A stretch of 63,980 nucleotides of DNA, filler included, from Olpidium bornovanus S191 (taxonomy: Eukaryota > Fungi > Olpidiomycota): assembly GCA_017911155.1 (NCBI GenBank). It is 24 parts of 24 records of this genome, joined end to end, with 100 filler letters (N's around TTAATTAATTAA, not from the genome) between each part and the next. Parts side by side here need not be neighbours in the genome. Positions count along the whole stretch, not along the records: positions 30,229 to 35,015 come from JAEFCI010002589.1; 23 more parts are not named here. The stretch is one strand, 5' to 3'. Position 1 is the stretch's first letter, and every line of letters begins with the position of its first letter. The notes beneath the pieces are model-generated. The model did no database searches and was not told the origin of the DNA. It worked only from the letters and a program-made list of their open reading frames with translations. Below are positions 30,491 through 33,861 of the stretch, piece after piece. The position numbers and the translations under genes were made by a program.

Positions 30491-33400
30491 ATGCTGGGAA
30501 AACACATCTTCGACGTGGCCGGCGCAGACCTCACGCCCTACTACACATACGTCGGAGGTGCGTGCGTGCGTGCGGGGCCGGGGTCGAGAGAAAGAAAGAG
30601 AGAGAGTGCGAGAGACGGAGAGAGAGAAAATAGAGAACAGACAGAGAGGGAGAGATCACCGTGAATGAGAGAGGCAGGCAGGCGCACGCGTGCCAGGCTG
30701 CCAGAGCAGAAGCTTTTTTTCTCTTTCTCTGTCTCTTTCGCAGAGCGGGTAAACTGGAACGGGGCGGGACCTCCCCACCTGCGGCCTGACGGCGCCCGCC
30801 CGCCGACTGCCGCCCGCTCAAAATCCGAAAACTTGCGTGCCGCCGTTATCTCCCCCTCCCCCCTTCCCTCCTCCTCTCCCCGCCCCGGCCAGGCGACTGT
30901 CCGCGGGCTCTCCGCTGTCCAAGCTGCCAGGACCCGTTGTTGGACCCGGTCGAGCTGGCCCCATGCCGCCACACGTGCGTTAGAACATACGTGCCCTTTC
31001 TGCTCCGCGACTCCCACCGTCGCCTGCGCCGACGCCTCCCGCCCCTCCTTCCGCTCCCGTACGCACACCCTCGCCTGCCCAGCGTCTGCATGCGCTGCTT
31101 GCAAGGGCGCCGCGACAGTGCGCCCGCGACGCCCCGCCGGTCGCCTTCGAAGCATGACGGCCACGCCAAGCCTGTTACCTGCCCCGTATGCAAGTGCGAG
31201 TTAGACGAGACGTCCTGGACCGCCCTGCGCGATGCGCACCCGCTTATCACAAGCCAGGTTCGCACGTGCCCTCCCCCCCCCCCCTTTCCCCGCCTCTGAC
31301 TCGCGTTCAGCGACCGCTTGACGACAACTTGACGGATCTGCTTACGGTCGAACTTTCACGATGCACCAGCTTGACGAGATGGTCGTCAAGTGCACCGAGT
31401 GCCAGGCGAGCATTTTCTTCAAGCCTTGCCTACTTCGCGAATAAGCCTCGACCGCTTCGCGCGTCCGGTTTTTGGGCCGGCCACGCTCACGCGTACTTTC
31501 AACCGTTGCAGCTCCAAATGCAAAGGCAGTTTTTTCTAACGCACTTCGAGCGGCAATGCGGTGGGGCTCCGAACGCGTAGGCGACTCGCCGGCTCTTTCG
31601 CCGCCCGAGTCATTGCTAACAGGGCGACGTCCTGCTTCCAGAATATCGTGTTGTCAGGTGCCCGAACGCCAACTGTACGCAGCAGGTCGTGCGGAAGGAA
31701 CTTGCGGACCACTTGGCGAACTGCTCTTCGGTGAGCGAACGACTGCAAGCGCAACCCGCCGCGCTGCCCAAAAGTTCGTGAGAGCAGAACCTCCTTGACA
31801 CGAGCAATTTCCTCAGGACGATCAGTACGAAGGAGCGACGGAGACGCAGATGCAGTTGACTCCGCGGGGCGCATCGCGCGTGTTGTCCCCCGTCGGTACG
31901 CGGTGGAATACGCCGGCTGCTCTGGCTGCGGAAGCCGCGTTTGAAGGGAACTACGCGGCTTCGTTCTTCTCCGGCGTGGTTTTCGAGTACTACCAGGTCA
32001 AAAACATCCACCTCCTCGGTTACTCGTCTGTCGCACGCCGTATTCCTCTGACTCGGTTTCCGCCCGTTGATATCCTTCCGGATTTGTGAACGGGAAAACC
32101 GTTTGTGCAGGGAGCGTTCGATGATCTGCCTGATTTCGACGCCCTGGAGCCTGCGGTATGTTCTCGCGTGCGCCCTGGATTTTGACGCGATGCGCCGAAT
32201 GCTGCTTCCTTACATTCCGCTTTTCCCGACGTTCAAACATGTCTATCACTAGTATGTCGGTGTAGTGGGAGGATTTGGCATTACTGAAGGAACCGAACTC
32301 GCCGTCTTTAACAAAGCTGGCGACAACGAGAGAACAACATTAGGTCCGTTTGCGCCGATGGGGAATTTTTTTTGGGGGGGCTCTTCCGTGAAGGAATCTG
32401 ACTCCCTTTTTGCGACTTCACTCTGCCATGTGCCCGGACTGCAGACGCAGGAAACTTTGCCGTGCGATTTTCGGCGTTCCTGGAAGTCCCTCAAGTAACG
32501 TTCCCTGACCGGTCGAAGTTCGAGTTTCGGGCTGCGCCTGACTTCGTCGAGGTTGCGCCATCCAGGAAGGACTTTACACATTTTATTTAAGCTCGAATGA
32601 CGGGAGCGCGCTTTGCATCGACGGGCAGCGCATCGTTGACAACGGCGGCCAGCATTACAGCACTACGATGGAGGGCCAGGTGCAACTTGCCAAGGGCCGC
32701 TGTGAAATACAAGTCCATTTTTTCCACAAGTACGGGAAAAGCGGCGAGATATGCCCTCTTCGTACGATCGTACCTGACGCTCCAACGCTAAAACAACAGA
32801 AGTGGGAAGATGATGGAAGGCTTCCGTGGAGGCGCCTCTTTGGTTGTCCAGTATTCCTGCAGGGGACCTTACTGGCCGCTGGCTGTGAATTCCATTCCCA
32901 AACAGGTTATTCCGGAAAATGCACTGGTGTACAGTGTGCAAGGTACGCCGCAGGCAGGTGATCGCTCTCTTTTTGGAATTCCTGCGACGATGCGGCTGAT
33001 TCGTGCTCGCCAACAAGATCCGCGCATCCGGAGCGAGCTAATGAAGTCGCTCAGGAAGCGACAGATGAAGAAGGCCGAGCGGGACGAGGACGCCGGCCGG
33101 CGCGCAAGTGCGGAAGCGTGCGCCGACCCGAGGGAGCTGCAGCTGCAGCTAGAAATCTCGCAGGCGACGATCCGTAGCCTGCAGGCCTCGGTCTACAACC
33201 TCACCGTCGAAAGCGACCTGAAGCTCCAGGCGATGCGGAGGGAGCTCGAGCAGGAAAGGAGCAGGACCGCCCGCATGGCTGCAGCGATGAGGGACGTTTT
33301 AAACTTTGGAAAAAGGCGAGAGGAGGAGGAGGAGGAGGAGGCGGAATACGCTTCGGCGGAACCCCGCGACAGGGAGCCTGGGTTGCCGACGGCGGAGGCG

Positions 33401-33861
33401 AGTGAAGGAGAGGAAAATGATATTTTCGGGGCCGACCGCGAGGTCGAAGAACTTGCAAACCGGAATTTTGACGACGTGCGGAAGCTCAAGCAGATGTACT
33501 TCTTCTCTCTGGCTCTGAGCATAAAGGTGATCCTCCAGGCCGGTGGGGGAAAATGGGGGGTGGGGGGGTCTTTTATAACAGCTCTCAGTTCTCGGAAGTG
33601 GCCTATGTCTTTCTTTTTTTTTGGCGTCCAGCTCTTTCTTGGCGCGTCGCACTCGACCGACGACGACGGGGAATCTGAAATTCCCTTTCTACATTTATTT
33701 CGATTTAGATGAATTCGCTCTGTTTCGATCGGCGGCCGCCATTTGCGCCAAACGGTGAAGGCGCCACCAACATTCAGGAGCTCTACGAGCTGTACGAGAA
33801 CGGGCCGGACGTCCCGATCGAGAGGTGGCCCAAGTTTATCAGCGAGCGCCTGCAGCTGTGA
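30491..33861 (+). CDS. RING finger + TRAF-type zinc finger + PA14 domain + coiled coil + C-terminal conserved-looking domain, multi-exon
   Basis: RING: LRCPSCQDPLLDPVELAPCRHT..CMRCL...TCPVCK (about 30910-31200). LDEMVVKC and CPNANCTQQVVRKELADHLANC (about 31370-31730). PA14: GVVFEYY, LPDFDALEP, NFAVRFSAFLEVP, GLYTFYLSSNDGSALCIDGQRIVDNGGQH...GQVQLAKGRCEIQVHFF (about 31973-32730). The stop is TGA at 33859-33861. The exon chain is only partly resolved. Confidence 0.78.

Follow-up and report, generated by a model that had tools for sequence, protein, structure and literature searches.

Olpidium bornovanus S191, an early-diverging fungus, carries a gene whose product joins a RING finger and two TRAF-type zinc fingers to a PA14 domain, and this product is interpreted here, at a probability of about 0.6, as a dimeric RING-type ubiquitin ligase that would use PA14 as its recognition module. 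The gene lies on the + strand at 30491-33861 of the window, the whole stretch of 63,980 nucleotides analysed here, along which all coordinates are counted; the piece that contains it covers 30229-35015 (record JAEFCI010002589.1). It is a eukaryotic gene of 14 exons with a coding sequence of 1833 nt, and it is expressed, as spliced contigs indicate; contigs and raw reads of four runs were mapped to it. The encoded protein of 610 amino acids has the domain order RING, two TRAF-type zinc fingers, PA14, coiled coil, acidic linker and helical tail. With few exceptions, PA14 domains are found outside the cell or in glycosidases, and their combination with RING is rare. The architecture is not described in the literature found: no paper joining PA14 with RING or TRAF fingers was returned by the search, in which matches to "PA14" referred to the Pseudomonas strain. 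This agrees with the sequence-only reading, an earlier note made from the DNA alone, which had pointed to no characterised fungal example.

Gene structure and transcript

The exon model is based on spliced Logan contigs from two studies. One of these, a contig of 1836 nt (run X1, record 1), spans all 13 joints, and another of 543 nt from the other study (run X2, record 4) leads from RING exon 3 through the finger exons into PA14 exons 7 and 8. The coding sequence opens with an ATG at 30491 and closes with a TGA at 33859-33861. With each joint shifted within its allowed ambiguity, the 13 joints correspond to 12 GT-AG introns and one GC-AG intron, and all 14 exons are open in the phase left by the preceding exon. 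The runs are presumed to be RNA by guess only; the contigs nevertheless derive from spliced mRNA, because 13 introns have been precisely removed from them. The RING, zinc-finger and PA14 exons share one mRNA. Both the limits of the gene and its single transcript across the RING, zinc-finger and PA14 exons had been proposed from the sequence; the limits match the exon model to the nucleotide, and the two contigs bear out the transcript.

An artefact, whether a chimeric transcript assembly or two adjacent genes read as one, is highly improbable. It could appeal to the presumed nature of the runs and to the fact that contig assembly can join neighbours, but the 13 joints have canonical splice ends and leave one open frame of 610 codons, and the two studies agree. 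Furthermore, the same collinear protein is encoded in Basidiobolus genomes and in an intron-free metatranscriptome open reading frame (ORF) from soil (L002).

A database fragment of the same Olpidium protein, P0001, of which an identical copy is present in the ESM Atlas, keeps intron 12 while intron 13 is spliced out. Intron 12 is in frame and free of stop codons, and its retention may give rise to an isoform with 25 additional residues between PA14 and the coiled coil. Two further X1 contigs diverge from the window, one at 30585, with 83 unlike letters before this point, and one at 31117, with 130 behind it; the 5' exon could be an alternative one, the contigs could be unspliced or chimeric, or they could derive from a paralogue.

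The RING and zinc-finger module

Domain scans were run on single exons, with database orthologues as stand-ins for the whole protein; exons 4, 5, 8 and 10, each shorter than 20 residues, lie outside the Pfam scan. The RING retains all eight ligands, arranged as C-x2-C-x12-C-x-H in exon 2 and C-x2-C-x27-C-x2-C in exon 3, with two residues between the histidine and the next cysteine. Taken by itself, exon 2 matches Pfam RING partially, at 18 bits, and the RING of the window aligns to those of two Basidiobolus ranarum orthologues, P0003 and P0004, which exceed the Pfam cut-offs. Exons 4 and 5 encode the first zinc finger, with the spacing C-x2-C-x11-H-x4-C. On the zf-TRAF profile, which has a cut-off of 27, exon 6 by itself scores 25 bits and the orthologues score 31-33 bits. 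When the N-terminal half of an orthologue was compared with solved structures, LNX2 (5din) scored 40 bits and LNX1 35 bits, and TRIM21 also ranked above TRAF6 (26-28 bits).

No membrane-like segment was detected in any exon, the highest 19-residue Kyte-Doolittle mean being 1.09, and the N-terminus lacks the look of a signal peptide. Together with the zinc domains, this makes the protein look soluble and cytosolic.

The protein resembles the TRAF family (TRAF6, TRAF7) in having TRAF-type zinc fingers behind an N-terminal C3HC4 RING, as well as in the presence of an oligomerising coiled coil. However, the TRAF coiled coil forms a trimer and stands directly before the recognition domain, whereas here it comes after PA14, forms a dimer in the model (the only state modelled) and is succeeded by an additional C-terminal tail. 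No MATH/TRAF-C domain was found in the scannable exons, in P0001, P0003 and P0004, or in the L002 ORF. Because the MATH test was negative and the domain order differs, the protein, as judged from its sequence, is not a TRAF and resembles instead a wider class of RING ligases with a separate recognition domain. TRAF7, in which WD40 stands in place of MATH, is the nearest analogy, illustrating that MATH can be replaced by another recognition domain. LNX1/LNX2 and PDZRN provide a second comparison: they give the best solved RING matches, with a weak second stretch on the finger, and likewise fuse a RING/finger module to a separate recognition domain. They differ in being animal proteins that use PDZ domains for recognition and have no such coiled coil or tail; no PDZ domain was found in the exons or the orthologues.

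The domain content listed in the sequence-only reading, namely RING, a TRAF-type zinc finger, a multi-exon PA14 and a coiled coil, is therefore recovered here by ligand pattern, by zf-TRAF and PA14 scores and by heptads. Its expectation of a cytosolic protein devoid of signal peptide and transmembrane segment also holds. Its description of the protein as TRAF-like, with PA14 in place of MATH, has to be given up: there is no MATH, PA14 precedes the coiled coil, and the N-terminal module is closest to LNX2/LNX1 and TRIM21.

The PA14 domain and its altered pocket

Exon 11 alone scores 31.6 bits on the PA14 profile (PF07691; E-value 1.7e-7, cut-off 24), and PA14 reaches 47-62 bits in the orthologues. 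Exons 8-12 are collinear with residues 214-373 of P0004 at 54-71% identity, and an ESM Atlas feature search with exon 11 returned PA14 clusters. The fold was modelled on the orthologue (P0004:195-385), from an alignment that comprised the family and the exons of the window, giving a predicted local distance difference test score (pLDDT) of 81.4. In a Foldseek search, this model matched sugar-bound MpPA14 (6x8a) with an E-value of 1.9e-8 and a template-modelling score (TM) of 0.62, and 115 matches were obtained at E <= 0.001. Other matches include RsgI sensors, Flo1/Flo5, Epa1/Epa9, the PA14 insert of a Kluyveromyces glycoside hydrolase family 3 (GH3) beta-glucosidase and anthrax protective antigen; with MpPA14, the RsgI dyads, Flo1/Flo5, Epa1 and the beta-glucosidase insert, the fold is shared at a Foldseek probability of 1.0 and a TM of 0.5-0.63. 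A sequence profile of the family matches RsgI PA14 dyads at an E-value of 7.8e-18. The domain is thus, on the predicted structure of the orthologue, a beta-barrel PA14 fold, so that the PA14 assignment made earlier is upheld by both profile and fold.

PA14 lectins hold their sugar via a calcium ion whose ligands are a D-cis-D pair and a polar N/Q in loop 2, and a C. thermocellum module without the D-cis-D motif binds neither calcium nor pectin (PMC6852018). These ligands were mapped onto the fungal proteins via an RsgI hidden Markov model (HMM) alignment and the same paper, and all retrieved PA14 proteins were aligned to the family profile. The calcium/sugar triad is N-D...H in 14 of 14 fungal members and in the window, where the letters at these sites are SSNDGSALC and VHFFH. 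With the first RsgI module as a ruler, the calcium ligand N131 aligns to the histidine of the family. At the positions of S-N-D-G-S and F-F/Y-H in the fungal members, the majority of related bacterial PA14 domains carry S-D-D-G-S and (Y/F)-F-E/Q; the motifs SxDGS, VVDNDGxH and (Y/F)F-x-GG are common to both groups. The domain therefore falls outside the calcium-dependent PA14 lectins defined by D-cis-D and N/Q, with a loop-2 mapping that is uncertain by two residues. It also differs in context, since the known PA14 lectins are extracellular or attached to enzymes and most have the classical ligands, while this one is fused to zinc domains in a protein of cytosolic appearance.

The classical triad is lost under either RsgI alignment, yet the pocket positions are invariant, which is read here as a pocket that has been maintained but chemically changed. 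Its ligand, be it a carbohydrate, another small ligand or a peptide, would probably be bound without the classical calcium ion, a mode of binding that fits a compartment with very low free calcium. Glycan binding by this domain is possible rather than established.

The idea of a cytosolic glycan-sensing ubiquitin ligase has to be considered in this light. In such a system, PA14 would bind glycans of luminal or cell-wall origin that membrane damage has exposed, storage or wall precursors, or microbial sugars, and the RING would mark the target, as in SCF-FBXO2/FBXO27. In its favour, all the top structural matches are PA14 domains that bind carbohydrate, several of them solved with sugar; by sequence, the top matches are RsgI modules that sense polysaccharides and PA14 domains attached to glycosidases; and the invariant pocket positions suggest a maintained binding site. 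On the other hand, the triad that contacts sugar in Flo, Epa, MpPA14 and RsgI is precisely the one altered here, and the C. thermocellum module that lacks the motif binds neither calcium nor pectin. It is also textbook knowledge that the cytosol contains too little calcium for classical calcium-dependent lectins. The proposal, which the sequence-only reading had put forward from the fold, is accordingly weakened by the altered triad and regarded as doubtful. Animal SCF ligases with FBXO2, FBXO6 or FBXO27 are cytosolic and have a carbohydrate-binding recognition domain; what they have in common with the Olpidium protein is the concept and not homology, as they use an F-box and an FBA domain in a cullin complex, and sugar binding by the fungal protein is hypothetical. 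A more specific version, in which the metal site has been rebuilt (N-D...H for D-D...N/Q) to work at cytosolic calcium, so that the ligase would sense cytosolic carbohydrate and ubiquitylate its carrier, appears unlikely. If true, glycan sensing by a ligase would have arisen here separately from the F-box sugar receptors of animals.

Coiled coil, linker and tail

The region behind PA14 is predicted to pair. A complex prediction with two copies of P0001:100-289 gave a score of 0.49, compared with 0.00 for the best of three controls; among eukaryotic proteins, 17 of 29 with a solved structure of a one-chain pair reach this score, and none of 30 with a solved single-chain structure does. Agreement between runs extends to at least 47% of contacts, with a partner pLDDT of at least 53. 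The predicted contacts are in register (124-124, 121-121), follow a 3-4 spacing over P0001 residues 105-156 and recur at 229-237 in the tail helix, which supports a parallel homodimer formed via the coiled coil. In the basic stretch preceding the coiled coil, an X2 contig (depth 9) has A>G at 33072, changing a lysine codon to an arginine codon; this is probably a strain polymorphism.

The acidic linker that follows is poorly conserved and probably disordered, judging from its composition. The tail, a feature absent from the earlier domain list, is a region of about 70 residues with columns that are invariant across phyla, the sequence of the window included. It is modelled as one long and two short helices at a pLDDT of 81.6. 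It has no Pfam match and no Foldseek match at E <= 0.001, and the sole match in a PDB-sequence search, a centriole protein (E-value 0.011), falls on the coiled-coil part. The best VIA-align Z of 6.1 is under the stated noise level for helical models, and in the ESM Atlas the feature search returned nothing usable and the structure rows were short helical look-alikes.

Table 1. Features of the RING-PA14 gene, in coordinates of the window
Feature	Coordinates	Strand	Description and basis
Whole coding region	30491..33861	+	14 exons, 1833 nt, 610 codons + TGA; joints from spliced contigs of two studies, phases, open frames
Exons 1-5	30491-30557, 30893-30974, 31083-31257, 31370-31405, 31512-31560	+	
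Exons 6-10	31642-31730, 31817-31996, 32111-32155, 32253-32343, 32445-32494	+	
Exons 11-14	32566-32729, 32800-32942, 33018-33526, 33709-33861	+	
C3HC4 RING finger	30916..31191	+	Exons 2 and 3, split by intron 30975-31082; 27-residue insert in second loop; ligand spacing by pattern
Two TRAF-type C2HC zinc fingers	31370..31730	+	Exons 4-6; zf-TRAF on exon 6; sequence pattern; orthologue scores
GC-AG intron	31406..31511	+	Sole non-GT intron of the gene; joint in X1 and X2 contigs, 3 bases of ambiguity
PA14 domain	31970..32942	+	End of exon 7 and exons 8-12; PF07691 on exon 11; collinearity with P0004; orthologue model
Intron 12	32943..33017	+	75 nt, in frame, stop-free; kept in P0001; would insert 25 residues between PA14 and coiled coil
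Coiled coil	33122..33277	+	Exon 13; predicted parallel, in-register homodimer; two-copy complex prediction, heptad count
Acidic linker	33308..33457	+	E run, then P/E/G-rich stretch; probably disordered; poorly conserved, gapped in family alignment
Conserved helical tail	33458..33858	+	End of exon 13 and exon 14, intron 33527-33708; motif KLKQ-YFFS-ALS-KMN ... Q-LYE ... P-E-W

Relatives and distribution

A HMMER search with exon 13 against 1.84 billion representatives returned two real matches, P0001 and P0003 of Basidiobolus ranarum; another match, P0002, is a spurious repeat protein with helix-turn-helix repeats and was rejected. P0003 and its paralogue P0004 are hypothetical proteins in which RING, zf-TRAF and PA14 all exceed the Pfam cut-offs, and the B. 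ranarum homologues include the uncharacterised K7432_001074 and K7432_013227. The exons of the window match along P0004 collinearly, starting in the RING at residues 20-39 and finishing in the tail at 526-553, and their per-exon identity to Basidiobolus is 33-71%. A full gene of the same architecture is present in B. meristosporus (L004:5001-7444; MCFE01000282.1). The annotated model for that species, P0011 (230 residues), ends just inside PA14; a tblastn search with P0004 locates PA14, coiled coil and tail further downstream, and since the remaining gene is found there, the public model is truncated. Two soil contigs (L002:28-1803 and L003:15-1790; Joint Genome Institute (JGI) samples 3300012469 and 3300012212) contain the same intron-free ORF of 591 codons with RING, fingers, PA14, coiled coil and tail. 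This ORF is only 36% identical to Basidiobolus, and the contigs look like mRNA of a eukaryote. The soil protein P0012 (436 aa) is this ORF called from an internal methionine.

Two profile searches added proteins composed of PA14, coiled coil and tail from Dissophora, Mortierella, Modicella, Borealophlyctis and Phlyctochytrium, along with P0012. One of these proteins, P0017 of Modicella reniformis (703 aa), has a shortened tail and ends in a fragment of a pseudouridine synthase (PF00849); its gene model is most likely a fusion with the adjacent gene. Relatives are annotated only as hypothetical or as "PA14 domain-containing". The Olpidium protein belongs to this family by its core: exons 8-14 match the same members in order, and they contain the QLQLxxAxATIxxLE block and the YFFSxALSxKM...LYE...W tail. 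Sequence comparison across Chytridiomycota, Mortierellomycota and Basidiobolus identifies PA14, coiled coil and tail as the constant family core. Beyond the early-diverging fungi, no homologues were returned by these searches other than bacterial PA14 domains.

The RING and finger module is distributed more narrowly. In the searches made, it occurs in three lineages only, namely Olpidium, Basidiobolus and one soil metatranscriptome eukaryote. Borealophlyctis, Phlyctochytrium and Mortierellomycota have the core without RING; in Mortierellomycota the module is replaced by a long N-terminus of low complexity, and tblastn revealed no RING or finger exons upstream of the chytrid locus or of the Mortierella alpina locus (L001 and L005). 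The absence of RING from these relatives implies that the ligase module was either added to an older non-ligase protein or lost from it. The combination of RING and PA14 noted from the sequence is thus present on one transcript in Olpidium and, in these searches, is not widespread, but RING is no constant part of the family.

This distribution raises the question of a different role, in which the protein would act mainly as an adaptor or scaffold for some structure of the cytoskeleton or of an organelle. The work would be done by PA14, coiled coil and tail, and RING and fingers would bind proteins or regulate, with no ligase output. The chytrid and Mortierella members without RING, the low-complexity N-terminus that replaces it in Mortierellomycota, and a tail and coiled coil that are as conserved as PA14 are all consistent with such a role. 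It is nevertheless judged improbable: the eight RING ligands have been kept in three separate lineages, which argues for selection on a working RING, and RING with TRAF-type fingers is a typical active E3 module in LNX and TRAF6, the closest solved relatives.

Proposed function

As a dimeric RING-type ligase, the protein would operate through a division of labour among its domains. The RING and the zinc fingers would recruit a charged ubiquitin-conjugating enzyme (E2), and the coiled coil would pair two copies; RING ligases commonly need pairing. PA14 would serve as the recognition module for a ligand or substrate, and the tail might dock the complex to a partner or structure.

Several observations weigh against this interpretation. 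The spacing of the RING ligands is no proof of E2 binding, and the occurrence of the core without RING means that the basic job of the family needs no ubiquitylation. The PA14 domain of the window was scanned by exon only, its fold being taken from an orthologue that is 54-71% identical. The reading of the pocket depends in part on the ruler: the second RsgI module runs two residues out of register and places the ligand at the N of HKNGK, which is S in the window. The score of the complex prediction is moderate, its pLDDT is low (53-57), and coiled coils are easy targets for such models. Finally, raw RNA reads of two 2026 runs give almost no depth on the gene, so that its expression may be low or conditional; these two runs are uninformative on transcript ends and strand.

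Other features of the locus

Homopolymer tracts surround the gene, with more than 100 bases, mostly C, upstream (30296-30408) and T runs downstream (33889-33975, 34009-34018, 34174-34183 and 34299-34314). The sole pile-ups of raw RNA reads are in the bins 33909-34068 and 34229-34388, where reads end in T runs that do not match the window; these are probably low-complexity or poly(A)-related mapping and not transcripts of the RING-PA14 gene. Further downstream, on the opposite strand, a 66-residue stretch at 34369-34566 (-) matches the XPG I-region at 33.9 bits (cut-off 24.9) and probably belongs to a FEN1/XPG-type nuclease gene that the edge of the piece interrupts. Another ORF lies at 34577-34897 (-), and an X1 contig covers 34367-34788 in minus orientation. 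An Rfam search of the piece returned no RNA family.

Significance

A RING ligase is defined by the binding partner of its recognition domain, and no description was found of one that uses PA14 for this purpose. The existence of a conserved PA14 family of cytosolic appearance with an altered triad raises the questions of what this lectin fold binds inside the fungal cell and how its site works without calcium. Lineages with and without RING can be compared, as a natural experiment, to see what the core function gains from ubiquitylation. The tail, a small domain without known relatives, may point to a new partner.

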